Shown in pieces: positions 4,330 through 48,100 of a stretch of 64,000 nt of DNA (position 1 is its first letter; each line of letters begins with the position of its first letter). A program made the translations under genes and the position numbers. Source of the stretch: Marsupella aquatica (taxonomy: Eukaryota; Plantae; Marchantiophyta); the NCBI GenBank assembly GCA_973895155.1, contig OZ316897.1, forward strand, positions 3,318,211 to 3,382,210, written 5' to 3'. Below the pieces are notes generated by a model, which ran no database searches, had not been told where the DNA came from, and worked only from the letters and a program-made list of their open reading frames with translations.

Positions 4330-5090
4330 AGGAAAAGGTGTTCTACACTAAGTACAGGTAACTGAATAAATGAATATTGAATGAAAAGGTAGTCTGTGTT
4401 GAAGAAACACGGTATTTGAGGTCTGTACTCAAGAATTCATATACAAAAATTTTGGGCTACCAGACTGTCATTAAATCTGCTCATCAAAGATAGAATATAT
4501 TAAAAAATTCAAAATTGAATGCTTTAAAAATATTTTGAGCCAATGAGGGAAAAAAGTCAATTGGCTTGGAGTGAAAGCATGAAAAAAATTTAAAATTAAG
4601 TGAAAAGGAGAAAAAAATTATTTCTATGGCAAGTGAATAAGAAACATATGAAAGTGGCAATGAGTGTAAACCCTCCATAATGACAAAAGAGAAGAAAACA
4701 ATGAAAGAACTTCAATTAACTTGATTCTTAACTGAATGAATAAAATTGACACTCTGTTCTTAGATTCAAATAAACAAAAATATTCTATCATTTGTGTAAT
4801 AAAAATATCATACTGGAATCAAGCTACAGTAGGTACAAGTGCAGATACTCAAGTTCAGACACTTGATTGGTATAGTAAAAAGGTATAAAGGCCAGCATCT
4901 GAATAAAGTGATAGAAGCCTCCAAACTATATGCTAAAATCTTAATTCTGCACAGCACTATCTTCTTATGCATTGAGAATGTGCACAAAGAAAAGAAACCA
5001 CCAAAACATATTGCTAAAACATGAAGAAATTAAGGATACGTCATATGAAACTCGAGTGTACAAATAGGTTTATTGATTAAAACAATTTTG

Positions 5091-5430
5091 AACCAACTGG
5101 CTCTGGTCAATTGGCCCGAGAATTGGCCAGGATGAACCTAGAACCCAAAGGTCCCAAGTTCAAACCCCCTCCCCCCTCCACATGCAAGGGTCGTGGAGGG
5201 TGAGTATGTGGGTGGGTGGGTGTAGGTGCGAGTACTGGTTTCTCTTCAGCCCTGGCTGGTTCGCTTTGGGCTCTGGTCCCACCCTCTCTCCCTCCTGGTA
5301 CTGGGTATGAAACCACCCCCCCCCCCCCCCCCCCCCTCTCGCTTACAGGCACCCCACAGAGGTGCATGTTTCAGAGGTGATCGTTTATCCTCTGTTGGAT
5401 GGATAAGCTTTCTGTTTTCAAGGCAAAAAT
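5091..5430 (+). mobile_element. second, diverged copy of the same SINE family
   Basis: Starts AACCAACTGGCTCTGGTCAATTGG like the 3997-4329 copy, with B-box-like AGTTCAAACC and the shared tail TATCCTCTGTTGGATGG...TTTTCAAGGCAA. TSD not clear. Confidence 0.7.
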
Positions 5431-6837
5431 ATAAATTCTATGGCATATCTTGCCTGGGCCTGGGGCACTTCATGAAATTTATTATTTATCTGTCTTTGTC
5501 AGGTTTTGCTTTACCTAAGACAGCCACAAGGAGCTGTCCGTGTGAATTGTGGGAGTAAGGGCCCCAAAATTAATTTGTGGGAGTAAGGCCCCCAAAACCT
5601 GACTCCCCAAAACTTGACAAATTCCTGTGGTCACCATTAGATTGTCATCTATATCCTCTACCCCCACCCCTAAACCCTTTCCAATCTGTTGGGTCTCATA
5701 ATGTGCTCCTGGCACTTCTGCTCCCTCTCCTGTCGCACTTGAGGGTGGTGACAATTATCCAATCATGAAAATTGAAAGGTTGTGCACCATTAGATCATTC
5801 CCATCTAACCAAAGTTATTTTAATTCACAGGATCGACAAGGTACGAATAATTGAATAAAAAGAGTGTCAATGTAATAAATGTTGGATTTCATGTTTTGTT
5901 GTTACGTATTTCAAATTTTTGAAATGTACTCCCTTGTAGGTGGAAGCCAGTGCCAAAATGAATTGTATTTGATTTTCCTTTTATTGTGAATATTGAACTT
6001 TGCTTGTACTGATGAAGGGCAAATGGCCCCCCATAATGATCGTCCTTTAGAACAGTACAGTCCCCACCATATATAGACCATTTTTAATTCAAACCTTTCA
6101 ATTGCAATAGGGGAAAGTGAAATGGCAAACACAAGGCCGGCGCTCTGTTTTTGAAAATGAATTTTTTTAATCAGGATAAGAAAAAGTTGTTTCAACTCAT
6201 ACACAATGTCATTTTAACAAAGGGCACTATCTTTGTATGAGGTGTTGTGTTTGAGTTTAGAGGTGCATTTAGAGTAGAAGCTCCAGTCAAAGCAGATGTG
6301 ATGAGACATCCGCCTCAGTTGCAGTTTAGTGCTAGTCAGCCTGGCCAGCCCAACATCCGTAGATGGAGCATCCAATTCTACCGTAGGCTTTGCAAGTTAT
6401 CATGATTGCAATTGATTTTGGCCTGAGTTGTTGTCATTACCTAGAACACAAGTACGGTGTAAGCAAAATTTGGGCTGTATAGGACTTACTAAGTAATCAC
6501 ATTGATTTGATAGTAAGGTGTTGGTTTCTTACTTTGCCTTGTAGGTCACTTACAGGTGATCGAGTGGTACTGATGCCCTTTGATTCCAGTTTTCCCGATA
6601 ACCAAGGGTTATTGTAGATATGACTTCTATGTGCTACCATACACCCAAAGAACAGGGCAAGCATCAGGGCTGTGGTTTTTGTGTAATGCATGGGGTGATG
6701 CATTTAAATTGACATGTAATCATTGACTTCACACAGTCTGATAGCTTTTGAGTATGACTTACTTTATGGTCCACGAAATGTAACATCAAAGTCTGCCTTC
6801 TTTTGCATTACAAATCTGTGTAATTTCAGTGTTTGAA

Positions 6838-17532: not shown

Positions 17533-19393
17533 AAACTACGTAATAGAATGAACATCGCCTATCTTCAGCACACGAGAAGTTTCTCAAGTCTACAGTGAAA
17601 CGCGCAATGAGAGTGAGCTGGAGTGAAAAGGGCTCATTAGAGTATTGATAGCAATGACGTCGCCAATGAAAGTAATGGAATAACTTAACTACCTTCAAAC
17701 ATGCTGTTGTCAGCAGGAGACAAGGCATTGAAGCCATCAACAAGGGGAAGAGATGATTCAAATAATTCTACAGCACCGACGTGATCAGGCTCAATCAGCT
17801 GAGCAGCGCAATGGGAGCCCGTACAGAGCATTTAATCAGTCGAAATTCAATTTTTAATTTTTTATCGAAAGGCTTGATGCAATAATTGTTGACAGGAAAC
17901 TCATGCACTTGAAGCTCGATGGTAAGCTATTATTCGACTTACTCATTCCATTAAGTACGGGCCAATCACATGTTTGAACCCATTTGTCTATGTCTGCTGC
18001 TTTGGAATTCAAAATTTTGAATATAGCAGAGTAGGAAGTCTCCCTGGACACTACCCCAGTATTCTGACCATACCCAAAAATAAACAAACAAAACATATCA
18101 AAGAGTCATTATAGTTTACCTTAATTGGTTTTGGTAACACTATTTGTGTAGCCCAAAATGTTTGCTGTATGCTATAATTTAAGTTGCCTATGTTAATTAG
18201 TGACTAACACTGATAAAGGTGAAATGAAGGAACATTAGGGTAACACTGTTTGGAGCATAGCGGCCCGGAGCAAAATCAATGAATATGATCAAGGAAGACA
18301 CATTTCAAAATTGACCAGGCACATTGGACATGTTTAAAGCTCCTTCTCTGGCTCTCTAGTGGAAATTCCTCAACAAGGAAGGCTAGTTGCACTATTGCCA
18401 AAGTGGTGGCAGAAGAGAGCAGCAATCTTAGTACCTGGGAATTACTCTCCATTGTGGAATTGCAACCCAAAATAGTATTAGCAAGAAAACCCACTGAGTT
18501 AGTATTATTTTCTGCTGAAACTGGCCCCACTCTAGAATTAGGGTTACCAAGGTTAATTATGAGAAAAAACTAATTTGGAGACAAGACCAATTACATTGAA
18601 CGGTCTAGGAGAGACTGGAGATGATGAGTAGCCACTCACTGCAATCTGCAAAGCACTTCGAGTTCACCCAACTTTAATTGAGACAATAATGTGTCTCCAC
18701 TACTTCATTGAAAGGTTCTTCCGGTACCCCTAAAAGAAGTACCTTCATCTTGCAAGGTATGTTTTATTAAAAAATAACAATATTCAGAAATGGTGCAAAA
18801 GACTCAAGTCTCACCACACTTAGATTGCAACCTGTGAAGCAAAGGGACTCTGTATCATCCCAAAAAAACAATATCCCCAAAACAGAGCAGTGTTGGAGTG
18901 AATGCCAAATGATGTTGAAAACTAGGTCATAATATGGTAGTGCTTGGTAGTTCATTAGGAACCAACACAAACACTGCACATTTTGTTGCACTGTGCTGCA
19001 AAAGATATAAAAAGGTTTCACTTGGTAAGACATGTAAAATGATGCATACGAATATGAACTTTGATTTCACAATTGTGCCTTTGGTTGCAATTGTTTTTGG
19101 GTATAGTAGGGGGCCTCAATAATCAGGCCATGAAATGTTTCATGGCTATTGCTATTCATCTGTCAGAACAGTGGCGGGTGAGTGTTCCAGGCACTGTACA
19201 TTTAGCGGCCACCATTTTGAATGGTCCCGCGGTGCCTACAGCATGGAGATGCTCACAAGGTCGCTGCCTCACATCATTTGGACACACTCATTTTCTTGCT
19301 AAATAATTCGTAACCAAGGGTTAGTCTGTGAGTTACTGGTGAGTACACTTTCCCGTTGAGGGTAGTTACTTCCATAATCTTTGGTGTAAACAG

Positions 19394-19619
19394 ACGGTGT
19401 TCTGTAATTTATGGACGGTAACCTGTAATGTTAAATCCAGACCAACGGTAAAGCTGTAATCCAGCAACGGTACTTTTGTAATCCCTTGACCGAACTGAGG
19501 TATTTTTTCACCGTTTGTCCATTTTAAAATCACCGTCCATCACACCTTCCATTTCAAAATTGTAGTTTTCCTTTGTCCATTTTAAAATGACCGTCCGTCA
19601 CACCGTCCATTTCAAATTT
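19394..19619. repeat. subterminal repeat array of the YR element
   Basis: Four ACGGT-N4/5-TGTAAT units at 19394, 19415, 19445 and 19467, then a 58-bp-period tandem duplication (19514-19619) in a stretch carrying four oppositely oriented ACCGT. Confidence 0.75.
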
Positions 19620-20050
19620 TCCATTGGTTTTGTGTGAGCAATGTAGTGATTGTTTACATTGTTGTCCGTGTCCAGGCATTGCATAAATCCTCGGTGTGAC
19701 AATTTGACAAAACTCTTGAGACAATACACATACTGAAATCACCGATGACTACTGAAAATCCAGTGGCTTTATTCAAAGTCGAAAAGGTCTAGGTGAGTCC
19801 TTGGACGATACATCAAAACAATGATACAGTCATGCTTAAACTCATACTCTAGATCACTTTATTCCGAGATCAAAATATAATCCGGTACTTCTATTCTATC
19901 TAAAAGGAATTAACAAGAATGAGTATTTACTAGACTACAGATAAGACTAGACTAGAGATAAGAGAGAATCTGAGTCCTTCAACTCTACAATAGCGTAGGT
20001 TGTCATCTTGTTTGACTAGAGTCTGATTGTCTGCAATAGTTCTACAGTGT

Positions 20051-22434
20051 CTAAATCTTTGGATCATCATTCTCCTTCTCATCTTCCTTCTTCACAATGA
20101 AATTGATTGTGCAGTTCTCAAATGTTCCAGATAAAGTGTTTCCAACTCCCTTCACTACACTGCCTCGGCCAGCACCTCCTCCAAGAATACAAGCAAGAGT
20201 TGGATTCTTGGTTAACTCACCCAAGAAATCAACTTCATCAAATGTCTTATGCCATGCATCCAACCACAACTGCAACTGCGGATCAGTCAGCATGATCCTG
20301 TCACTCGATGTATTCATTAGCTCCTACAAAACAGAAATGAAACATTAGACAACAGCAATCAAAAGTCTGTGGAATTGATAACAAAAAACTATAGACAGTA
20401 TGGACTTACTTACATGTACATTCTTACTGAGTAAGAGGCCTTCATTCAATTTTGAGCCGCTGGATTCCTGTAATCAGCACACAGGAAACCAACCAGTAAA
20501 TCTTTGCAACTCAAACAACAAATTACACAACAAAAAGATAGTTCGTCAAGAATCTACATACCCCAGAGGTCTGTGGAGTGATGGCCAGCTGCTGATTATG
20601 CTGCAAACTCACCCTATCGATCAGGGGATTAAGATTTGCCCCACTTCCCACCAGATTCTTGGTATAGAACTTCTGAGCAACCTCAGTCAAAGCTTTTTCG
20701 TAGCTCAGATCAGGATTACAACCAACCAGAGTAGCAGCTTCTTGTTTAATTTCTTGAGTGCGGTCATACCTCAGATATCCACTTGTAGTGTGATGGCCTG
20801 TTACTAGCATTCCAACTTCATCTGGGACTCCTTTCGTGGCCATCCGTGTCACTAAAGTGGCCCTGCCACTCTTGTTAGAGAACAAATCAGGAGGCAACCC
20901 TACTAACTTCAGCATGTTAGTCAAAATATGTGCAACTCGATCCTGAGCAACTTTATGGCTTCTGTTGTACCAGACATTTCCTGCAGGGTTAGTAATAGGC
21001 TGCATGAACAGATCCGGCTTCTTACACTCATCCAGTGGAGCCATGTGTCTCAAATATTGCTTCACGCACATAATGAAGTCCTCTTCAAAACTATGAAATG
21101 CTCTTCGAAACTGCTCCTCTGAGTAACGATCCAGAGTCACACTGTTATTCTTGCTCTCTCTCTCTTCAAAACTGTCCATCAGAAACGCACCACAGAAAGA
21201 ATCAGCACTTGGCTCACCAAAATGACTTTCAAGAAGATACATAAACGACTCAAGGAAACTTACCGCACGTATTCGCGTCCATCTTGCGTGGTGTCAATAC
21301 GTACATCATTCCTCTTCAACTCCCACAGTTCTGAACCCCCTCGGATCCCCAACCGAACAAGAAAGAAAAACGCAAGACGCTTTTGGCAACCATGGGGGCT
21401 ACTCAGTTGGTGGTCGATGTCTACAAGTATAGCTACTTCCATCTGATCAGTCAATATCTCCACCTGCATTACAAAAACAGCAAGCACTGAGTCTCTCTTC
21501 AACGCGGCATCACATTAACAAACATCAAATATTCAACGAAAAGGGACAATCATATTTTTTTTCTCTTCTTGTTCACTCCTTCTCGAGAAGACTTCTTGAT
21601 GGCAGCCCGCAGAACCATGCATGTCTTTGAGAAGGCTGGATGTATCTTGATGTTGAAAGTGGTTACATCAAGGAGATTCTCTCCCCCTCTCAAAGACCTC
21701 AAGTCACTGGCTCGTTTAATCAAACGGTTATAAGCATTGCACATGTTCATCAAGGTTGCACTGGGGTATTCTTCGCCATTAACTTTCACAGCTCTACTAA
21801 AAAGATCACTGAACAGCTGATCTAATTGTGGTAGTGGCAAATCGCCAAGAGGAATACTCATATTCCAGCCAATGGCTTTTCAAAGCGAATCTGCTCGCCT
21901 GAGAGCCCAACGATCGTTCCTCTCAGACGGTAATCTCTCCTCTCCCTTCCCAGCATTGGTCAGCAATTGGTCTGGAATAGACCTCAAGCCTGGAATGCTA
22001 ACCTGCAAGGCGCTCCCTTCTCCATGAGGCGAAATGACTTCCGAACCAGCAGAAACAGCAAGATTGGCATCACTAGAACTATCATCAAGAACACAGCCAT
22101 CAAGCGTATTGCCATCACTAGATTTATCAAAGAAACTCTCGAGATTCGGAAGATCAAGGTCCTCATCTCCACCAAGCTCATTGAGATAGAGCATATCCAC
22201 ATCCTCTACATCTCCAGAGTGCAGCTAGCTCATAGCTTCATCACCCTCCGCCATTGCAATCTGCAAACCAGCAGTAATCAATGAGAAGGAGGCATTCGGA
22301 TCAGCTTCATCAAAGAGAGTCATCAAATCTATTGAACAGAAAGCCAAAGATGCATATGTACAAACTTTCGACACAAAATATAGTCCCAAATTGACAGTTC
22401 GAACAACTCTCCTTGCTCCTTCAGCCCCCGCCAT
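20051..22434 (-). pseudogene. Crypton/DUF3504-type tyrosine recombinase, 5 exons, ~670 aa, inactivated by point mutations
   Basis: Exons ~22434-21556 (start uncertain), 21463-21264, 21171-20562, 20467-20414 and 20323-20051 are phase-compatible. Motifs LDQLFSDLF..VKVNGEEYPSATL, GIRGGSE (Arg), YVRFEERESKN (Lys; rebuilt across an intron), FMQP..VWY, NKSGRAT (HxxR position), TGH..SGYLRY (His, Tyr) and C-terminal GTFENCTINF. Lesions: in-frame TAG at 22225-22227, TGA at 21880-21882, and a probable donor GT->AT at 21555. Confidence 0.88.
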
Positions 22435-24415
22435 CAATCTTCTTTGATTTGAACGACCCTGAATGCTGCAAGCCCTGCCTGCCACTAGCAGCACTGCAAT
22501 GCCACGGATCGATGGAACAAACACATACAGGCACCGCTAGGCACGACTTCCTCTCACCCGCCCCTGCCTCTGTCGCTTGCGTCTGATTTCTGAAACTGCA
22601 AAAGCAAATGGCCCAAATGAGCTTCGCAGGCGCGCCTCCGTTGCTTTACCCCCATACGAGCCCTAATTCTCATGCTGCACTCTCACTGGCTGAACCGGCT
22701 ACTCCCAGTAACTCCCTTCCTAACCGTTGGTTACGTCCGATAACACATATCTTGTCCGTCGTTGCTGGGTTCTACCGGGACTCCCCAGTTCCTTGCCAAA
22801 CTCTCCCGGCTCCTGCCGGTCGAGTCAGGCTCGTAACGGGGTTGCCCCATTACAACCCAGTAACGCCGGACTAGACCTGCGTTATCTTATACATAGCAAA
22901 AACACCCTAAACTGAAAGCTGCACAAATAGCCCGGGCTCCCTACTATTGGCAAAACACTAACAGAAAATGGAAAAGTCCCGCGGCTACTCTGTGTGGACC
23001 ACTATCAAAGGCTGCCAGTCGTTTTTCTGACCGTGTCCGTGCTGAACCTGACACGGACACTCAAAAACATAGTGACCTCATTATTGAGGCCCCCTATCAA
23101 GACTACCTCCTGAATTTTGAACTACAGTAAATTTGGGGTACTCTACTGTAGCTGTCTAGAAAACCTCCTGAAAATTTAATCCTAGTGTGCCAACAAGAAC
23201 TACTGTAGTATATCAGTACATTCACCAGGAGAGACATTCAAGACTGCATTCCCTGAACCTCACTGAGGAGACAACTTTCTGGTTGTCGGTTCTTTAGTAA
23301 CGACGATTACTCTATTCTGAGAATGCACATGCCTGGATATTGATGTGGCTCTCATGGGAAGCTCAGGTTTTAATGTCAAAGCAGCAGGGCCAGCCGTGAC
23401 ATACCATCAAAGCACATGTGACGCCATTTTTTAATGTCTAGGTCCAGTCTGCTTTTGGGTAGGACCTGTGGTAGAAGAACTCTCCATGTTCCTATCTCCA
23501 GGAGGGCCCGGTCCTCGCATGTGATGGAAGAAGTTGTCCTGTTCCCAGAGAGGAGGTCCACCATGAAGGATTGCTTGGAAGACGTAGATGTAGTAATAAA
23601 TGTGGACCTTCGTGCTTGGAACATGCTAACTGGGCTACTGCAAGGAATTTCAGTACTCCCAGTCCCACTCAGAAGATTGCTCAGGGTTCGGATGGCGTGT
23701 CCAGAATTTCCTAGACACAGCAGATTTGATCTGTCAACAGTGCAGAAAGTTACTGTGGGTGGGAGGGGAGCTGCATTTGAAGTAGATACGCCTTGCAACC
23801 CGCTCGACTCAACAATGAATGGTTGGAGCACCTTAGCTCTCTGATCAGTTCCCAACTTAGGGGGACCGGGAAAGAGGTGTGAAGCACAGAATTTTCTTGC
23901 CAGAGTAACTAGATGAAACATAGACCAGCCCAATAGTAAACTTTAGGGTACCTACCTTGAAGTAGTTTCGGAGCACTTTCAGCTCAATATCCACATTTTC
24001 AAGATTAGTTTGTGATATATCAGATTACATTCGGTGCTTTTAAATTTATAATGGTTTGCTTTCGAAAGGAAGATCAGATCACCATGAAAGCTGTTGAAAG
24101 AGAGCGGTTGTATTGTGCTTGCTCGATGGAGTGGAAGCTGCAATGACATGCTCCTGTCTCAAAATTGTTAGATCTAAGTCACAACGTTGTAAACAAATAT
24201 TTATTGTCTTTGCTTATCTGTCCTCGTTGCCCGACAAGCTCATGCAGGAAGAGTTTTGAGTTGGCTCTAATGATTCAACAGGGAACTGAGTAGCAACTTC
24301 AGGGCCAAAGGAATCAGCTCGGGCCTTCAAGAATCGAATCGTTCTCCAGATTTGAGAGGAATGGCCAGAGCATGTCTAAATATTTAGACTTCGTTCTAAT
24401 CCAAAGACTAAAGAG

Positions 24416-26515: not shown

Positions 26516-28390
26516 TCAAGTGTCATATACCAAAGGGGAATATTCTGGACACCACATATGCTTGTAGACAAAGTCTAAAAGGCCATCTGCTTCGGCAAGC
26601 TCTTTGAGCTCTCGAGCATCCAGGTCCCTGTATCCCTCGGCCACCTCCTCTTTAAGAGCTTCTTCGATCACAGCTGCAGCAACTCGAGCTGTGATGTCCC
26701 TAATTTTCGGAATAGGGGGATAAATAATACCTTTCTTCACACTCTCTTCGTCCATGACTGAAGCAAGAGACTCAGCAGCAGCGTGGAGCATGCCGTCTGT
26801 AATATACTGAGCACCACTTAAATGCGTTCCAAGTCCAATCCCTGGAAAAAGATACATGTTGTTCCCCTGGTTCACGTAGCCTATCTTGCCATCGCCAAGA
26901 TCCACATCCTGGAACGGGCTCCCACTAGCAAATACAATGTTTGGTCCTGCATGCTTAAATGCTTGCTCTGCTGTACATTCGGCTTTCGAAGTTGGGTTGG
27001 ACATCGGCATTATTGCTGGTCTTACACAGTCCGATCGTTTCATGGCTTCCAGAACCTCGGTGCTGAACAATCCCCCCACTGCTGAGAGCCCCATGAGAAT
27101 ATCCGGCTTAACCACCTTCACTACATCAAGCAAGCTCGCACCCTCAGTAAGGCCTCCCTTTTCGGCTTCACCGAGATGACGAGAATATGGCTTTACGTCT
27201 GGATCAATATCCGTTCGCGCATCAGTTACCAAACCAAGTTTGTCCACCAGCCAGAAGTTGTCTGCGGATTGGACTTGTGGAGCCTGACTGCCAACAACCC
27301 TCGCTATTGCCTCTTTGAGAAAGGCCAGAACCCCGAGCCCAGCACTGCCTGCACCTACAATCACAATCTTTTGTTTACATATATCAGAGATAGGACGACC
27401 TTGAGCCCTCACTGCACCGAGAACTCCTGCCAGAGCCACCCCTGCTGTCCCCTGGATGTCATCGTTAAACATACGATAATGGTGACGATATCTCTGAAGC
27501 AGCTTGAAAGCCCACTTGCTCTGGAAATCCTCAAATTGTACGATGACATTCGGGTACCGAGAGAAAACAGCCCCCATAAACTCATCAACCACAGCCATGT
27601 ACTTCTCTCCCTCGATCCTTGGGGTGTGCAGCCCCATGTAGAGAGGATTCGCCAAAAGCTGCTGATTGTTCGTGCCCACATCAAGCATGATTGGTAAAAC
27701 TCTCTGAGGATTCATACCTGCCGCAGCCACATACAGATCAAGCTTCCCAATGGCAATCCCAATGCCCTGAACACCGAGATCACCCAGACCTAAAATTCTG
27801 CTTCCGTCTGTCACCACAATCATGTCCACCTGCTCAGCTGGCCAGTTGTAAATCATGGAGATCATCTCGCCCTTATCCGCAGCACTGAAGTACATTCCCC
27901 TGGGGCGTCGAAACAAGCCACTGTAGTTCTGACAAACCAGTCCAACAGTAGGGGTGTAAACAATTGGCGCAAAAGCCTGAATGTTGTCAATAAGAATCTT
28001 GTAGAAAAGAGTCTCGTTCCTGTCATGCAGCCTGTTGAGAATGCGCCACTTCGCCAGAGCTGCCACCTCTGTCGCCCCATCCCTCGTGTTCCTCTCCAAA
28101 GAACGGAAATTCGCCATGAAACGGTCAATCTGCATCTCTATGCTCATGACACGAGGAGGGAGCAATCCTCGTAGCCCCAACCTCTCTCTCTCGGTCAGGG
28201 GAAACGCAGTGCCCTTGTTGTACCAGGGATCATGCAGGATGTCCGAGCTGCGCTTCCTCACTATGCTCGGCCTCGTGATCGGCCTCCGAAACTCTCTCCT
28301 CCCTCCATCCCTCATGTAAAAGCAACAAACCTGCTCCAATCCTCTGAAGAGCGATTGCCTGCTGCTGCGAGCCTGAGAAGCGACCGCCAT
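26516..28390 (-). CDS. NAD-ME: NAD-dependent malic enzyme, mitochondrial, single exon (624 aa)
   Basis: Uninterrupted ORF with an Arg/Ser-rich presequence-like N-terminus. Motifs VYTPTVG, VTDGSRILGLGDLG, QFEDF, FNDDIQGTAGVALAG, GAGSAG, MSNPT, ASGSPF and NQGNNMYLFPG. Confidence 0.95.
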   Translation of the reverse strand: MAVASQARSSRQSLFRGLEQVCCFYMRDGGRREFRRPITRPSIVRKRSSDILHDPWYNKGTAFPLTERERLGLRGLLPPRVMSIEMQIDRFMANFRSLERNTRDGATEVAALAKWRILNRLHDRNETLFYKILIDNIQAFAPIVYTPTVGLVCQNYSGLFRRPRGMYFSAADKGEMISMIYNWPAEQVDMIVVTDGSRILGLGDLGVQGIGIAIGKLDLYVAAAGMNPQRVLPIMLDVGTNNQQLLANPLYMGLHTPRIEGEKYMAVVDEFMGAVFSRYPNVIVQFEDFQSKWAFKLLQRYRHHYRMFNDDIQGTAGVALAGVLGAVRAQGRPISDICKQKIVIVGAGSAGLGVLAFLKEAIARVVGSQAPQVQSADNFWLVDKLGLVTDARTDIDPDVKPYSRHLGEAEKGGLTEGASLLDVVKVVKPDILMGLSAVGGLFSTEVLEAMKRSDCVRPAIMPMSNPTSKAECTAEQAFKHAGPNIVFASGSPFQDVDLGDGKIGYVNQGNNMYLFPGIGLGTHLSGAQYITDGMLHAAAESLASVMDEESVKKGIIYPPIPKIRDITARVAAAVIEEALKEEVAEGYRDLDARELKELAEADGLLDFVYKHMWCPEYSPLVYDT

Positions 28391-31571: not shown

Positions 31572-34500
31572 TGTAAGAAACCGTCGGCTCCTGACTAGAC
31601 AGCAATGCGGAAACATGAGAGACACTCAATTAGACGCTACACCGACGAGACACCCCGAGTGGAGAAACTCCTGAAGGCTCCATAGCAAATGAGAGTACAT
31701 GTGAAGAATGAGGGAGAGAGTTCTCTCCCTCCAGCCTATACCCCCCAAGGGGGCCAAGATGAGTGGGCCTAAACTAAACGGATCTTATCCTAATGTAATC
31801 CAGGGTTAACTAACCCTAGTAAGGCCAAACTAACTAAGTTAGGAACTCGAGTCAATTCCTAACAATCTCCACCTTGACTCCAGTTCACACAATGAGTCAG
31901 GTGATATACAATACGTAACTAAGTAACATATCTACATAGTTTCCAGTTTGGCCCTAACATTAATAATATCCACACAATGACTAAAGCTATTGGTAGGTAA
32001 AACTTTGGTAAGCATGTCTGCCGCATTCTCCTCTGAAGCCACCTTCTCCAGAAACATTTGCTTCGTCTCAATCACCTCACGGATGAAGTGATAACGAATA
32101 TCAATGTGTTTTGTCCTGGCATGGAACACAGGGTTCTTAGCCAGATGCAAAGCACTTTGACTGTCGCACAGCAACACCGGTCTTTCAGGTGAAAGACCTA
32201 GATCACTCACCAATCTCCGTAGCCAGATCAGCTCCTTGGTTGCCTCACATGCAGCCATGTACTCAGTCTCAGTAGTAGACAACGCAACACAAGATTGAGT
32301 TGCCGACTTCCAACTAATACAACCTCCACCCAGCATAAACACATAGCCTGTAGTAGATTTCCTGTTATTCAAGTTACCAGCATAATCTGAATCTACAAAA
32401 CCTTCCAACTCTAATGTAGGGTCTGCTTTACCGTCAAATAAGATCCCACAATCTAAGGTACCTTTCAGATACCGCAAAACCCACTTCACTGCTTCCCAGT
32501 GAAGCTTACCAGGATTTGCCATAAATCTGCTCAAAATGCTAACAGCGTGGGCAATGTCAGGTCTAGTGCATGTCATTGCATACATCAAACTACCCACAAC
32601 ACTATCATAGGGAACATGTTTCATCGCCAGTCTATCACTCTCACTAGAAGGGCAATCATTCTTTGAGAGTTTAAAGTGGGAGGCCAATGGAGTACCAACT
32701 AGTTTTGCATTCTCCATTCCATACTTGGCAAGTACCTTCTCCAAATACTGCCTCTGAGACAACCATAATTGCCTTTGCTCCCTGTCACGATGAATCTCCA
32801 TCCCTAGTATCTTCTTGGCCTGACCCAAGTCCTTCATTGAAAACTCCTTACTCAGCATTGCTTTCAGATGGGCAACATCAGACTTATTCTCAGCCAGGAT
32901 CAGCATGTCATCCACGTACAATGCCAGCACAATGTAACCAAAGCATGAGTAATTCTCCACCTCCTTCATGTAAATACAACAATCATGTTCACTTCGTGTG
33001 AACCCCTGAGATAACATGAAGGAATCAAAACGCTTATTCCACTGTCTGGGACTCTGCTTCAATCCGTATAACGAGCGCAAGAGCTTACACACCAAGTGTC
33101 TGGTCTTCTCATCAATAAAGCCTGGAGGCTGAGTCATATAAATCTCCACATCAAGCAATCCATGCAGGAAAGCAATAATTACATCCATCTGATCTAACTC
33201 AAGATCATAGAATGCCACAATCGCAAGTAAAACACGGATAGTAGCGAGTTTGACAACTGGTGAGAAAATCTCCGTGTAGTCCAAGCCCTCCTTCTGGGTG
33301 TACCCTTTGGCCACAAGGCGTGCCTTGTAAGTGCCATCCTGCTTCTTCTTGTACAACCATCTACACGGAACCAGTGTTTTCCCGCGAGGCATGTCAGTCA
33401 AGCGCCAAGTTGAATTCTTCTTCAAAGAATTCATCTCCTTCAACATCGCCTCCATCCACTTAGCCTTCTCTAGAGAGGCCATAGCTTCTTCATAGCTAGA
33501 GGGGTCTCCATCTTCAGTAAGCAAAACAACACCGGGATCATCGTCATGTGCAACAACGTGAACACGAGGATCTACAAAACCAAATCTATCAGGGGGTTGG
33601 CCAAAATTGGCCCTGGTGGAGCGCCTTGGTTGAGGAATTGCTCCTCTACCAGAGGGACCAGCAGCTTCCTCATCACCACCAAGCTCCACCATAGTGGGTT
33701 CCTCCACCTGTTCCTCCTGAATATCCCGGGGTCTTGACAACCATTCTTTGTCAAAAACAACATTTATGCTCACAACTGCCTTGCAATCGACAGGATCCCA
33801 CAATTTATAGCCCTTCTGCCCAGGACTAAAGCCTAGAAAAATACATTTCTTAGACTTGGGATCTAACTTAGACCTGTGTGTCTGCTCAATGTGAACATAG
33901 GCAACACAACCAAAAACTCGGAGTCTAGAGTAATCAGCAGGTCTCTTATACCACAACTCAAATGGAGTCTGCATCAACTTACTACTATGCGGTGACAGAT
34001 TGTAGACGTATGCAGCTTGGTTGACAGTTTCAGCCCAAAAGTTGTTAGGCAACTTGGACTTACATAGCATGCTGCGTGCTTTTTCCAGTAATGTCCGATT
34101 CAACCGTTCTACAACTCCATTCTGCTGCGGGGTCTTCGGTACAGTGTAATGACGCTTGAGGCCAAGGTCCCGACCAAATTGATCAAACTCATTGGACTTA
34201 TACTCGCCACCGTTATCGGACCGAACACACTTCAACTCCTTCCCAGTTTGTAGCTCTACCATGGCTTTCCACTCCTTGAAAATCTCAAAGACTTGAGACT
34301 TCTCCTTCATGTAGTACAACCAACACAGTCGAGAGTAATCATCTACAAACGTCACAAAATATCTGGCTCCACCCAACGATGGCTCCGGCGCTGGACCCCA
34401 AACATTCGAATGTACATACTCAAGAATCTCATGAGAATGGTATGAACTAGAACTGAAACTCACTCTCCTCTGCTTGCCGAAGATGCAATCTTCACAGAAA

Positions 34501-37500
34501 GATAGTTTACCAGATTGAGCGCCTTGCAGCAAATCTCTGTTTGCCAAGGCTGCCAATCCTTTACCACTCAAGTGCCCCAACCGTGCATGCCACAAATCTA
34601 TGGCTTGTGTGCGACCAAATGTTGAGGGTGCTTCAATTGAAGCAGCCGTAGATGACTCTATAGCAGATGTTGCCGCTGCATCCGAACGTTCCACCACAGA
34701 ATCCACATGCTCCACTCTAGGAGCAATGACATCTCCTTCCAAGATGTACAAATTATTCTGCCGTAGCGCCTTAATCAAAGATATATCATCTTTGACGACA
34801 AAGAGCACACCATCACGTGCAGTGAAATGAGATCCACCAACTTCCAAAGCACCAAGAGAAATCAAATTCTTAGAGATGTCTGGTATGTGTCTGACTTGCG
34901 TCAGTGCTCGCACAACACCATCAAACATCCGGAATTTGATAGTCCCCATGCCAACAATTGCACATCGGACTCCATTTTCGATTTCCACAGTACCGGTACA
35001 AGGTTGGTAAGTGGAGAAATATGATTGCATTGGACACACGTGATAAGAGGAACCCAAATCCAACATCCATTTATTGTCATACACAGAATTCACAGCACCA
35101 ATACATAGCACTTCAGCAACATCCTCATTATCAGCAATCACAATACCAGCTGACGATGAGGACGCACCATTGGAAGTAGGACGCTTCTGCTTTGATAGAG
35201 AAGGACAATTCCACTTGGTGTGGCCCTTCTCATGGCAATGCCAACACTGAACTTTCTTACTACGGGACTTAGATTTAGATCTACTATGTGATTTAGATCT
35301 AGACTGATCCGTAGTACGCTCCGTCGATCTGCCTCTAACCACTAAGGCAGCAGACTCATTGTCACGGCCAGAAAGTTGTCGATTGCCCCATTCTGCAAGA
35401 ACGGTAGCCTTCACCTCATCCAATTTCAACATAGACTTGTCATGTGTGATGACCGTCACCAATGTTGAATAGGTCTAAGGAAGCGACATCAACAAATGCA
35501 TCGCAAGTTACTCATCGGTCAACTTGTCTCCCACCGTGGTCACCTCATGCACAATCTCATCGAAGAGACTGAGGTGATCACGCATGTTGCCACCATCCTT
35601 CAACTTCAACCTGAACAGCCGCTCCAAGTGATAAATGCGAGTAGTCAATGAAGTACTCTGGTATAGCTGAGTAAGCATATCCCAGATCTTCTTGGCATTC
35701 CAATCCATCCTCAACATGTTCTTGAGAATGTTGTTTGCCAAGAACAACTCAATTGTGCTACACGCCTGCACCGACATGTCCTCCCACTCCTCATCTGTTA
35801 GATTCGAGGGTTTCACTCCAGTGAGGGTCTTCTCAAGACCTTGCTGGATCAACACATTGGTCACCTTTCGAGTCCAGAGGCTGAAGCTGACCTTCCCGTC
35901 AAACTTCTCCACCTCAAACTTTGGCGCTGCAAGCTTTCTTGAAGTCATTGATGCTGCTACAAACACACAGGAAACACACAACCAAAATACCTCCACCCAA
36001 AAATTCACCAAAAAATGAAAGTTCACGAAAGTGGAAATGGAATGCACCGCCGCGTAGCCTGCAAGGTACACTGCCAAGATCTGAAAACAATTTGATGAAA
36101 AACTTCTTCAGCAAAAACTTATTCAACCCGGACCGGAGGTGGGTCAAAATGGCCGTTTTGACCCCCGACGGGTATCTTAGGTCCCGAAAAAATTTCGCAA
36201 TAGTTAACTGTAAATTGATTTCACAGGCCCGTGCTCAACTCCCTTGAGCATCCCCTTGCAAAGTCTTACGGAAAAATTCTTCCTCGACGACTGCTGAAAT
36301 TGGAATTTTTGGCCAAAAATCAGCTCTCTGGAAAAGTATCTTTTGGAGGGAATCAAAGTACAGTTGAATTTTACAGTAGAAGGCACCCAGTAATGACACA
36401 TGTCCGGCTCAAAAGAAACCCCAATGCGTGAAAAGAAAAACAGATGTTTCCTGTGTAAAAGTCATCGGAGGTACTCGCCCCACAGACTTCCACAAAAAAA
36501 TTCTCGTTCACACATTTGTTCCCCTCGCGCCACCTGTCCCCAAGAGCATAGGGCCTCACGCCCCCTAAGCTCCTCCTTAAAGTGCTTCCGAGCCCTCCTG
36601 GCTCATCATAGGGCTTAGAGCCCCTTTTAAAATCTCCCAAAAAAAGAGGGAATTAAATTCTCCTCCCATCCACTCCTTAAGTACTTAGGGCCTTGTGCCC
36701 ACGTTAAATGCTCCCAAGAGAAGGGAGTGCCTCGCTGCCCCTCTCCTCCTCTTCAAAGCTCTTTGGGCCTTGTGCCCCCATCTTTACGTACCTGCACAGA
36801 GCCTTGTGCCCTATTAAAGAGTTCCTGAGAGGATGGAGCTATGAACTCCCCCTCCCCTCTTACTTTAAGACTGTACCTGCAGGTACAATCGTACCTGCAC
36901 AAGCCGCCTCGGGCTACGCCTCCTTAGGGCCTCGTGCCAAGAGCTCCCGTGGGAAGGGAGCCATGTACGCGCCAGGGAATACCGTCCGACACGCCGTATA
37001 AGGTTGCGTGCGGCGACCACAATGAGTATACAAAAGAGTAGAAAATTGCAACAACTGCCCCACAAGACACGACCTTTTTACGAAGAAAAAAGCACCCCCG
37101 ACGACCCCACAAGTGATTCATCTAACCACTAAGAGCCATAGTCGAGAGTTCCAAGCACTTAAACGAGCAATACATAAGATAAGATTGTTCCACACTCGTC
37201 GGATGAAACGTTGTGAAACTTCCACCGTGACGTAGTGCCCGTCGATGCGCACAATAAATTGCCGGATTGTCCTCCCAACAGTTTTCTTAGACCCACTGTG
37301 ACCCCGACTGTGACACATCCGATACTTCACGATGAAGCTTCAATCGGAAAACCGTCACCGCTTTCAAACACGAAACTATTAACGCAAACCGACCAGTGAA
37401 ATGATCACGCAACCGTCGACGATGATTCAATCTTCCACCTCGATCCAACACAACGAAACGCTCTCACCACTGCCCAGGCCACCGAACCACGAACGCGAGG

Positions 37501-38566: not shown

Positions 38567-39995
38567 CTTTTTTTATGAATAATTTAAATTTATAAAGAAC
38601 GGAGAACGGGCCGGGGGCAAACACCACCCAAACCGAGGAACAAAAGAGAAGGGGGAAGGCCACACTCCCGGGGCCAAAGTACCTCCCCCCCCCCCACCCA
38701 CGACCAGTAACCCTCAATCGGGCCACCTGGTCCAAAAGGCCCACAGATCCCCGTACTCAATCGTGGTCCACCTGGGGAGCATACACACAGATCTACTCAT
38801 CGCATAGTCCCTATTGACCCTGTATTGCTCACTAGTCGTATTGAACCAAAATTTATCGCAGTCTCTATCGATCCGTTGCCTATGATACCTCTGGTTTTGT
38901 CTGCAATAAAAGGCCTGGTCAACCTCAGCAGCCTGACTGTGTTGACCAGGTCTGTGGCATTTCCTACCGAAGGACCTAGACTCAACCTTGCTAATGTTTC
39001 TGGCCCTGGAATAGCCATGGTGCAAGATGTTGCTGCACTCACTGGCAAAGCTAAAGGAATGCATACTCATCACTACTAGTTGGAATTGGCAGCATTCCCA
39101 AGAATTGGGAGTGTTCCTTTCTTTCCATAATTCATTGCTCAGTTCAATGATAAGCACCAGTGGTCCAGGGTTGTGCTTTTGGACCAACACAGCAATGCGA
39201 ATAGAATCAAACAAATTATCCTGCAGTCTATTCAGGTAAGTGGAATGAGATAACAAAGTCTTGATTTCGCGCCACCGGTTCCCCACCTTGTTGCAGCTGT
39301 AGAAAAGGTGGCTCGTGTCCTCAAAGCTGGTGTTGCATCTTTCACATAGTCCAGGGCTAACTCCCCAGTGGTGAGCCCGACCGTTTGTGACGAAGCCATG
39401 ATGGAGCAGACGCCAGATGAAGAACCTGACCTTGGGGAAAGACCACCCACCCCAAATCTTCTTCCACCAACGTTTCCAGTCGGTTGCGGACTCCAGCTGA
39501 CCCCACCTTCTACTAACCATAGTGTTATCAGTGTCGGTGCCCTGGGCAGGGGAGGCCCACGTACTTGTTGGGAATTTCCACCCACAGTTGCGGGAGGTCC
39601 ATTCCCACCTCCACCCTTGGCATTTGTGGAGTTGAAACTCCAAGGGAGGATCCCTGATAGTTAGCTCATGAATCATAGAATTCTCTGTAGGTATTCAGCC
39701 AGACTTGTCTGGTACTCCTGATCCTGGAAATGAGCTCCTCCCTATCCCTCCAACAATGTTCTGGGGTGATCAGATCACCCACCCTCTTGATCCTCCTGTT
39801 GGCGAAGAAGCGTCTAAGATCCACTTGCTCCTGCCGTCTTCCAAACTTATCCTTGAAGAAAAGAATCATGGCTTGCTCGATCGAGATTTGTTTAGGGATT
39901 GATCCCTCATGAAAGGAAAAGTGGAGGCGAGGGAATTGAGAGGTCCAGCTCTTAAGAAGGTGCCGGATGGTATAGGACCCCAAGATTCTGATTTC
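38567..39995 (-). mobile_element. 5'-truncated L1-type LINE (ORF2 C-terminus with zf-RVT)
   Basis: 20-bp TSD CATGCCCGACATATTAACTT at 38547-38566 and 39996-40015, with a T-run tail at the left. Peptide WKKIW..PKVRFFIWRLLH..CERC..EDTSHLFYSC..LWKERN; frameshift near 39670. Confidence 0.9.
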
Positions 39996-44723: not shown

Positions 44724-45123
44724 CTCCTTCCGATCTCCGGGTTTGGGTTTTTCGTCTGATCTCTGTGGTGATTTTGTCGTGTGGTTCTTTCTCGCCACAT
44801 CACTATTTCGTTGCTGTCTGTTTCTCATTCTCATTTCTCATTTCTTGTTGCGTGTTACGTTTTTGCTTCCAACACTCCATTTTTCCTGCTTCTCCCTCTT
44901 ATTCTTTAATTTTTTACATTTTGTGCTTCGTCATTGATTTTTATGTATTCGGGCTCATCTCTTCTGTTGCTATAGTTGTGGCCAATTTTTCGTTCTTCTT
45001 CCACTTATCAATGTCCATTTTGCACCTATTTCTATCGTTTGTTCTTACGCTCTTTAGCTCCTGATCCTCATTTTGGAGCATTTTCGGTCGATCCGATCGG
45101 AGTGGGACCGAAATCTGGTCAAG

Positions 45124-48100
45124 ATGAGCTCCTTCACGGTGACAAGCACGAAGTCCAGCACCAAGGCGGACTCTGGAAAATCGTCCACTGGCTCCTCCCC
45201 TACGAGCATGGAGTCCATTCTCAATCAGCTCTATGCTTTCCGGCTGAAACCGAAGCAGCAAGAGCTGCTCATTCGCGTCTCGGTGCTCCTTCTTGTCTAC
45301 ATTCTTGCCTTTGCCACGCGGCTCTTCAGTGTGTTGCGCTACGAGAGCGTCATTCACGAGTTCGATCCCTACTTCAATTATCGCACCACGCTGTACCTCA
45401 CGGAGAAGGGTTTCTATGAGTTCTGGAACTGGTTCGATTATGAGAGCTGGTATCCCCTCGGCAGGATCGTGGGAGGGACCGTGTACCCGGGCCTCATGGT
45501 CACGGCTGCGCTGCTGTACTGGGGGCTTAGGTTACTGAGCTTCGCCGTGCACATCAAGGACGTCTGTGTGCTCACTGCTCCCTTTTTTGCGTCTAACACC
45601 ACTGTTGTGGCTTACTTCTTCGGCAAGGAGCTCCGGGACAGCGGAACAGGCCTGATTGCTGCCGTGTTCATCGCCATTTGCCCCGGTTACATTTCTCGGT
45701 CCGTGGCAGGATCTTATGATAATGAAGGGGTAGCAATTTTTGCATTGCTCTTGACCTTTTACCTTTTTGTGAAGGCTGTGAATACTGGTTCTTTGGCTTG
45801 GTCGGTCGGCGCTGCCTTTGGCTACTTCTACATGGTGTCAGCCTGGGGAGGGTACATATTTATTATCAACTTGCTTCCGATCTATGTGTTGGTGCTTCTC
45901 GTGACGGGGAGGTATTCCAAGAGGCTGTACATTGCTTACAATACAGTGTACATTTTGGGGACACTTCTCGCAATGCAGATCCGCTTTGTGGGATTCCAGC
46001 ATGTTCAGTCAGGAGAGCACATGGCTGCTTTGGGAGTCTTCCTCTTCTTGCAGGTCAGATGCATGCAAATTTTAATTGAATTTTGAGTTTGGGCCTGGTA
46101 TTTTTGGTGCGTGTTGGTGGGGATGACTGGGTTCTATCACAGACCATGAAAGTTTTAACCTATGATCAAGTCTTAACCTAGCTGAATATCAATGTAGTTT
46201 TGATAGTCTTCAATTTTGTTTTCAATTTCTCTCCGCTCTGAAGTGCAGGTTTACTTTCTTGTATGAATTCAATTACTTTCCGGGAAAATTGGGAGTTGCC
46301 CTAATCTAGTTCATAAATTGAAGCAGAGCTGGCGATCTCTCAGTATTAGAACAAGCTCACGTGCTCGGGATCTCATGCCTGTCCTAGTTTCAGGTTTCAG
46401 AATGCATTTGCTGGTCTTTAGAGGTTTAACGTTTACATCCGGAGGCTTCAAATTAGAACGTGAAATCCTTTCATGTTAGGAGAAAGTCAGAGAAACTGCT
46501 TTTGTGTTTGGGTTTTCAACCCTCTCGCTCTTAAATAGATTTACACAAAACTGCCTGGGACAAGCTGGACTCTAAAGGTGACAGCTTGGTCCTACGAATT
46601 TCAGAGCTTCTAAAGGAGTTTGATGTTAGTGTTCTTGTAGATAGCTCAGGCTATCTTGCAAGCTAAATTCGCAGTCTGTTAAGTTTTAGGGACATCTTCT
46701 GATTCTGAAAGGTTGTATAGAACGTTGTCAATTCCATTTCAGCTTGATATCATTCACAATGTTCAGATAGTCGAATTGTGACCTACAAAGATCAACGATG
46801 GTTTGGAAAATCAACACGATTTTGTTAGAGGTCTCTGGAAAGTTAGTTGTCGTTCGTGTCCAAAGTGCCCTTTCAAAATCGCAATTGTTGACTATCAGTG
46901 ATTCGCTAAAGGTCCTTTTTTTCTCTGAATGCAGGTGTTCTATTTTGTGGAGTGGGTTAAAGCCCAGCTTGCAGATCCCAAACTCTTCAAAGCTTTCTTG
47001 AGAGTCACTGTGGTTTTGGCAGGGTCAGTGGGGGCCTTGGGACTAGGCTTTGGACTCGCCACTGGTTACATTTCTCCATGGACCGGACGGTTTTACTCCC
47101 TTCTGGATCCTACATACGCCAAGGACCATATCCCCATCATTGCGTCAGTGTCAGAGCACCAGCCGACCTCGTGGTCGTCTTTCATGTTTGACTTCCACCT
47201 TCTTTTGATACTGTTCCCAGCCGGCTTATATTTCTGCTTCAGGCGGCTGAGTGATGGTATCATCTTTATCATCTGCTACGGCCTAACGAGTCTGTATTTT
47301 GCTGGAGTGATGGTTCGTCTCATTCTGGTGGCCACTCCTGCGGTTTGCTTGATTAGTGCAATTGCCGTGTCTGCGATGTTGAAGAGCTTTTCTAGACTCC
47401 TTCGAGAGAAATCTTCACCGGTTCCCTCGTTCAAGTCTTCTGGTAGCCAAAAAGCATCTGCCAAGGTTTGTTATTTGATTACTCTGCTAAGTAGACGTTT
47501 GAATGAAGGTGTCGTAGCCAGTAATGATCACTTCAAAGACGTATACGTTTGTTATTTGATTACTCTGCCAGTAGACTCTTATATTGTATCATATTTTCTG
47601 TTGTGACATTGTGGTGCGAACGGTGTGTGCAGAGTGGCATTGATCAGGGTCTCCCATTCCAGAAGGAAGGAGCTCTTCTGTTGCTCCTGGGCAGTCTATA
47701 TCTTCTAATCCAGTTCGTAGTGCACTGCACCTGGGTCACCTCAGAGGCTTATTCATCCCCATCCATAGTTCTCGCTGCAAGGCAGAGCAATGGGGACAGA
47801 GTCATTTTTGATGATTTCCGAGAATCATACTACTGGCTCCGTCACAACACCCCTCCAGATGCGAAGATTGCTTCGTGGTGGGATTATGGATATCAAATTA
47901 CAGCTATGGGTAACCGGACAGTGATAGTGGATAACAATACTTGGAATAATACCCACATTGCCACAGTCGGCCGAGGAATGTCATCATATGAAGATGAGGC
48001 TTATCAGATATTCAAGTCTCTGGATGTTGATTACGTGCTTGTGGTTTTTGGAGGTGTCACCGGATATTCATCGGACGATATCAACAAGTTTGTGAACAGC

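Follow-up and report, generated by a model that had tools for sequence, protein, structure and literature searches.

How can a plant transposon carry the ends of one class of mobile element and the recombinase of another? The question is raised by positions 19107-23096 of a 64,000-nucleotide stretch of DNA from the liverwort Marsupella aquatica (contig OZ316897.1, 3,318,211 to 3,382,210; 'the window' hereafter means this whole 64-kb stretch). A preliminary description made from the letters alone had seen here a single transposon, bounded by terminal inverted repeats (TIRs) and TA, whose only gene is a Crypton-type tyrosine recombinase (YR). Mariner-like TIR/TA ends on a YR transposon would amount to a new element class. 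Our analysis indicates that the interval is not one and illustrates instead how nesting can mimic hybrid architectures: with a probability of roughly 85%, it consists of two nested mobile elements, a Crypton-like unit (19309-22891) that lies inside a TA-flanked TIR element of about 407 bp. We read it in this way because the outer shell occurs without the YR gene, because the corresponding unit in another liverwort, Calypogeia fissa, ends at the inner boundaries, and because relatives of the unit lack the TIRs.

The outer repeats reported at 19109 and 23094 are indeed present. Their arms, 19107-19130 and 23073-23096, are 24 nt long and 92% complementary; counted without the TA they span 22 nt with 20/22 positions matching, and TA stands at both ends. 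The TA next to the right TIR occupies 23095-23096, and the one next to the left TIR, 19107-19108, could equally be an extension of the TIR by 1-2 nt. A 15-mer from the TIR core has two exact occurrences in the window, one per strand and located at both ends of the interval, where 0.12 would be expected, and no third copy was found elsewhere within the 64 kb. The shell is made up of a left half at 19109-19308 (plus strand; TIR 19109-19130) and a right half at 22892-23094 (plus strand; TIR 23073-23094).

Shells that lack the recombinase were found in public sequencing data. Logan contigs from four runs were placed on 18600-23600 at 85% likeness, and contigs in X2, X4 and X6, three runs from two studies, jump from about 19274 to 22892. 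Another X2 contig jumps from 19295 to 22896, and in additional ones a loose end lies at 22892. At the jump, the 34 intervening letters equal in length the window segment 19275-19308 and match it at 26/34 positions, which means that the paralogues are collinear with the window up to 19308 and resume at 22892 (...AAAATT|CATAGC...) with nothing between. In three public runs, two terminal modules of about 200 bp are hence joined base-exactly (19308|22892), without the intervening 3,583 bp. One X4 contig diverges from the window exactly past 23096, that is, right after the TA.

The same boundaries emerge from Calypogeia fissa. There the family has at least two copies at different loci with unrelated flanks (here L002 and L003), and the part that they have in common, 88-93% identical, comprises only 5477-9857 of L002 and 5454-9023 of L003. 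At the DNA level, the window starts to resemble L002 at 22895, which pairs with 5474. The alignments have a common start, GTATA(A/G)GATAAC, and a common end, GTTACG, which correspond to the window boundaries 22891 and 19309, and the TIR sequence has no match in L002. The Crypton-like unit of 3,583 bp at 19309-22891 (minus strand), inserted in the outer element, is therefore defined twice: it is what the paralogous shells are missing, and its ends are those of the unit common to the two C. fissa copies.

These observations bear directly on the idea of a single element bounded by TIRs and TA, which its own tyrosine recombinase would move through a circle whose junction consists of the two TIRs around TA. 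TIRs, TA and a YR gene are all there, no DDE transposase lies inside, and a lox-like palindrome would result from joining the TIRs. We nevertheless consider it very improbable. The TIR modules are found joined without the YR unit, the C. fissa family stops precisely at the inner boundaries and is devoid of these TIRs, and the inner unit's own ends are conserved across relatives with about 19-28% protein identity. In addition, the X2 interior 20270-20937 (catalytic exon) is represented by one contig at single-copy depth, and both ends are 2-3x deeper. Shells without a YR and YR units without these TIRs show that the two do not travel together in other copies or relatives. The notion of a TIR-bounded YR transposon family with TIRs and TA as its termini has to be given up, and the predicted circle junction of joined TIRs falls with it. 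Because the TIRs belong to something else, the outcome is in spirit one that the preliminary description had itself listed as speaking against it.

Alternatively, the shells without a recombinase might be internal-deletion derivatives of a TIR-bounded autonomous element, and their breakpoints would then agree with the C. fissa ends by chance. MITEs (miniature inverted-repeat transposable elements) usually originate as deletion derivatives, and a single breakpoint is common to all YR-less contigs. That breakpoint, however, matches to the base the unit ends defined independently at two C. fissa loci, as well as the conserved GTTACG and palindrome ends of distant relatives, and no relative is flanked by homology to the TIR modules. 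We give this explanation very little credibility.

Several points weigh against the nesting of two elements. The evidence for YR-less copies consists of Logan contigs alone, placed at 85% likeness. One paralogue resembles the window beyond the TIRs too (18602-18671 and 23097-23194), which makes at least one shell 'copy' a duplicated locus and not an independent transposition. The shell is low-copy: at an identity of at least 85%, about 2-4 copies are counted. An empty site that would show the TA to have been duplicated upon insertion is not at hand, and a DDE partner did not turn up. For the inner unit, neither a circle junction nor an excision footprint nor a polymorphic insertion was observed, and the direct repeat at its junctions in the window measures just 4 nt with one mismatch.

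The paralogous locus in X2, X4 and X6 deserves a separate mention. It is about 92% identical to 18602-18671 and 23097-23194, lacks 18672-19182 (left TIR included) as well as the YR unit, and looks like a diverged duplicate of the entire locus. Run X6, considered as a possible source of an empty site, bears the same species label, has low coverage and contains almost none of the stretch's words, and only diverged paralogues were seen in it.

The outer shell (19109-19308 plus 22892-23094), short and non-coding, fits a MITE of the Tc1/mariner type, a class assignment derived from its sequence features. It shares with Stowaway-like and Tc1/mariner MITEs a size of about 400 bp, the absence of coding sequence and TIRs of about 22 nt adjoining TA. 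It differs from them in that its TIR matches no nameable family, its copies are few and no transposase partner is known. The combination of such a shell with a recombinase gene has one precedent. MarCry-1_FO of Fusarium oxysporum is the only TIR/TA-flanked Crypton on record and is moved by its own Mariner transposase (PMC3212892). Like the interval in the window, it places a Crypton YR gene between short TIRs flanked by TA. The Fusarium element encodes its own Mariner DDE transposase and exists in several composite copies, whereas the window has no transposase and one composite, and its shell also occurs without the Crypton.

By analogy, MITE and Crypton cargo could be mobilized together by a DDE transposase acting on the TIRs. 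The Fusarium Mariner-Crypton composite with its 16-bp TIRs and TA duplications (PMC3212892) and the window TIRs, still intact at 20/22 positions, would agree with such a composite. We judge it improbable, since at a likeness of at least 85% the catalytic exon is covered by a single contig in X2 and in X4, a second copy of the composite did not appear, and no DDE partner is known.

The protein encoded by the nested Crypton-like unit was examined with the help of P0160, a full-length homologue of 711 residues from C. fissa, whose alignment reveals a minus-strand gene in several exons. The first coding exon (21553-22254) comprises the N-terminal region and the core-binding domain, and P0160 aligns to it over 22209-21553 with 52% identity. 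It is followed by the exon with the first catalytic arginine in GIRGGSEL (21263-21466; 62% identity to P0160 335-401) and by the catalytic exon (20619-21170; 64% identity to P0160 402-585), which holds the lysine in ERESKNN, KSGR, GHH and the nucleophilic tyrosine in GYLRYD. The last coding exon, with limits taken from its open reading frame (ORF), lies at 20054-20317 and encodes the C-terminal tail; P0160 645-711 matches it on 20251-20054 with 37% identity and an expectation value (E) of 3e-9. The R-K-(H/K)xxR-H-Y layout noted before is thereby borne out, as GIRGGSEL, ERESKNN, KSGR, GHH and GYLRYD follow in the canonical order of YR catalytic residues, the first on one exon and the others on the next. 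Among 11 homologues, G126, R127, H150, Y156 and Y159 are invariant.

The reading frame itself is broken. Two in-frame stops interrupt the first exon, TAG at 22227-22225 and TGA at 21882-21880, the latter facing an arginine both in P0160 and in the metagenomic homologue on contig L001. With these two stops the window copy is dead and no longer able to make the enzyme. The C. fissa copy L003 encodes an uninterrupted protein of 711 residues. No RNA runs holding the stretch were found.

Assignment of the protein required profiles and structure. Pfam searches with six minus-strand ORF pieces gave no YR family, neither DUF3504 nor Phage_integrase matching the window exons, and P0160 likewise had no direct match to DUF3504 (PF12012) or Phage_integrase. 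The catalytic exon produced no significant phmmer match against the PDB, and a metagenome scan with protein alignment returned 62 pattern matches, of which 0 were confirmed. With a profile made from the catalytic exon plus its homologues, 460 proteins were collected, 90 of them at an E of 1e-10 or better; the named members are from Calypogeia fissa and the fern Adiantum. Among distant members, P0037 matches Phage_integrase at 1.1e-6, above the cut-off, and P0022 matches DUF3504 at 4.4e-5, below the cut-off. A further profile built from 17 longer members hit the DUF3504 domain of QRICH1 at 8.1e-8, XerA at 0.016 and other integrases at about 0.02.

The fold was assessed on P0160, a natural full-length homologue, and not on the broken window gene, whose exons were searched separately. 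The AlphaFold (AF2) model of P0160 has a confident core at 213-571, with a predicted local distance difference test score (pLDDT) of 70-90. Foldseek matched this core to Cre with an E of 3e-6 over about 350 columns and a target template modelling (TM) score of about 0.5, and also to XerH, the Tn1549 integrase, lambda Int and QRICH1. In the ESM Atlas, the nearest clusters belong to DUF3504/Phage_integrase families (score 0.98, TM 0.80). Judged from sequence profiles and the predicted structure, we are dealing with a tyrosine recombinase that has a Cre-like fold and is probably of the DUF3504/Crypton type.

The DUF3504 relationship proposed earlier consequently holds at the level of profile and fold only and did not extend to a direct Pfam match on the window exons. 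Pfam likewise identified no DDE, reverse transcriptase (RT) or RNase H domain in ORFs of about 60 residues or more within 19107-23096, in agreement with what had been noted. The proposal of an RT-less, Crypton-type YR in a land plant stands, given the liverwort host, the homology to DUF3504/QRICH1 and the Cre-like predicted fold.

A recombinase gene of this type might also be a domesticated, Crypton-derived host gene, comparable to the animal DUF3504 genes, which happens to lie between inverted repeats. Domesticated DUF3504 genes are well known (PMC3212892), and at a likeness of at least 85% the catalytic exon occurs once. The two in-frame stops make domestication extremely unlikely, as do the C. 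fissa copies, which sit at unrelated loci with sharp common ends. Moreover, the non-coding ends are conserved and structured, and catalytic residues are kept in a transposon-like context.

These non-coding ends are compound. In gene orientation, the unit opens with an imperfect palindrome of about 155 bp (22736-22891, minus strand), a hairpin module with a DNA folding energy of -49.2 kcal/mol and a z of -9.7. Its C. fissa counterpart folds with a z of -6.7, and in 11/61 consensus pairs of the palindrome, both partners have changed between the two species and still pair. Directly after the palindrome comes an internal inverted-repeat arm (22705-22735, minus strand; homologue L002 5633-5667), which starts with CGTAAC in gene orientation. 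Its partner is the 3'-terminal arm (19309-19339, minus strand; homologue L002 9823-9857), which ends with GTTACG; it is 31 nt long and 84% complementary to 22705-22735. The corresponding L002 arms measure 35 nt and are 91% complementary. The direct repeats at the junctions read TTACGT on both sides of L002, AAGTA/ACGTA in L003 and TATG/TACG in the window.

Towards the 3' end, a subterminal cluster of ACGGT/ACCGT motifs (19394-19607, minus strand) includes a 48-nt tandem duplication. The last 520 nt contain 8 such motifs, which lie in the last 300 nt or so, versus 0.7 expected and a maximum of 4 in 1000 shuffles. Their order, GACGGT copies followed by ACCGTC, is identical in both C. fissa copies. 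Palindrome and motif cluster may serve as accessory binding sites, or the palindrome region may be a cassette between two similar sites; both roles are possible. The tandem duplication in the unit's 3' non-coding region (19514-19561 and 19572-19619) is 92% identical, and other copies (X2 and X4) skip 66 nt at 19514-19619, from which it follows that the repeat number varies among copies.

A similar plan is seen in distant relatives with about 19-28% protein identity to P0160. One family, represented by the intronless P0158 of 843 residues, terminates in TTACGT, precisely at the point where its two genomic contexts part; its 5' palindrome measures 124 nt, and the arm behind it opens with ACGTAAT. 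In L009, another relative, a 150-bp palindrome is followed by ACGTTATGG. Mobility is indicated by the two C. fissa loci with unrelated flanks, by the two contexts of the P0158 family and by the shell without the unit in X2, X4 and X6. P0158 is encoded letter for letter on 12 metagenome contigs of the Joint Genome Institute (JGI) from several samples (L004-L008), again in two genomic contexts, with LTP_2 and Copia-like ORFs among the neighbouring genes. The pattern points to a plant in these samples whose Crypton was active not long ago.

Upstream of the L002 unit lies an inverted-repeat element of about 430 bp (5051-5478), with ends (ACATAAT... and ...ATTACGT) that resemble those of Crypton arms. 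It was considered as a homologue of the shell and rejected (alignment score 36 versus 31.8 +/- 5.1 for shuffled sequence). It was also rejected as a module that travels with the element, as it is missing from L003. The repeat adjoins the 5' end of this C. fissa Crypton copy, and the two have a TTACGT site in common; it may represent a non-autonomous mini-Crypton that received the full element in its end.

How might such a nested arrangement have arisen? In the scheme that we propose, the outer MITE would have been moved in trans by a DDE transposase encoded elsewhere, and the 3,583-bp Crypton-like element, with its gene on the minus strand, would then have integrated mid-shell. By analogy to Cryptons and bacterial YR elements (PMC3212892), the recombinase would excise the unit as a circle. 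Its junction would read GTTACG|TATA(A/G)GATAAC and expose a TACGTA-like core between the short inverted arms GTTAC and GATAAC; for C. fissa, the predicted junction is GTTACG(T)|ATAGGATAAC. Integration would proceed by crossover with a short similar target, here presumably CTATG^AATT in the middle of the shell, and leave TACG-like direct repeats. Both the circle intermediate and the crossover site are what we infer from these related systems.

The insertion splits a small inverted repeat at the centre of the shell (TTGCTA ... TAGCAA in gene orientation; 19290-19320) within its 9-nt spacer, which may reflect chance or a preference for lox-like targets. A general targeting of hairpin-prone DNA was also considered and found unsupported, the flanks of L003 having no adjacent inverted repeat.

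The junction predicted in this way invites comparison with Cre/loxP and Xer/dif. Like these sites, it would have a 6-7-nt spacer with TACGTA between two short inverted arms (GTTAC ... GATAAC), and the predicted protein core superposes on Cre. The long palindrome beside the site of the liverwort unit has no counterpart in loxP or dif.

Among eukaryotic elements, the closest comparison is with Cryptons. These are described as low-copy elements that lack TIRs and whose termini carry a short direct repeat of similar sequence in each copy (PMC3212892, PMC8969392, PMC13465315), and one survey annotated Crypton among the superfamilies of all its groups (PMC4438587). The liverwort family resembles the DUF3504-type, CryptonA-like members (Goodwin 2003; Kojima & Jurka 2011, PMC3212892; Glomhoppers, PMC13465315) in its low copy number and in having a YR as sole enzyme and no RT. 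Short direct repeats at the termini (TTACG/T in the liverwort family), the profile match to the DUF3504 domain of QRICH1 and the predicted Cre-like fold add to this likeness. It differs from them in its liverwort hosts, with relatives in ferns and moss-like metagenome DNA, and in proteins that score below the Pfam DUF3504 threshold. A further difference concerns the compound ends, a 5' palindrome of about 125-160 bp combined with a 31-35-nt inverted-repeat pair of which one arm is internal and one terminal; Cryptons as published have no inverted repeats, unlike the liverwort unit. Our literature searches yielded no description of Cryptons from liverworts, mosses or ferns and none of palindromic ends in Cryptons.

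On this basis we tentatively suggest, at somewhat less than even odds, an undescribed Crypton lineage in liverworts, ferns and moss-like metagenome DNA. It would be characterized by conserved compound ends, with a 125-160-bp 5' palindrome maintained through paired changes, two inverted repeats that meet at a TACGTA-like core, and subterminal clusters of ACGGT motifs. In it the palindrome could act as a cassette between two lox-like sites or as a structural cofactor of recombination. If true, either role would mean that the ends of eukaryotic YR DNA transposons can follow a new logic. Intact copies of the lineage apparently exist in Calypogeia fissa.

The value of the window copy is modest: it provides a copy, with base-exact ends, of a land-plant Crypton lineage whose end design is conserved from liverworts to distant relatives. 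It supplies a concrete recombination site that can be tested, and C. fissa a naturally intact enzyme, with which the movement of eukaryotic YR DNA transposons could be studied. We know of no biochemical demonstration of Crypton movement so far.

Apart from the nested elements, the window contains several other genes. An uninterrupted, intronless ORF for an NAD-malic enzyme of 624 residues (26519-28390, minus strand) is 89% identical to its Calypogeia fissa counterpart, compared with 79-80% for the Marchantia and Riccia enzymes; by these sequence identities, the host is a liverwort near Calypogeia and distinct from C. fissa. The neighbourhood is rich in transposons, with a Copia-type polyprotein ORF of 1,176 residues (31935-35462, minus strand; RVT_2, rve and gag_pre-integrs) and a separate zf-RVT ORF (38717-39676, minus strand). 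Further downstream, a gene for the oligosaccharyltransferase STT3 (45073-47603, plus strand) comprises at least two large exons.

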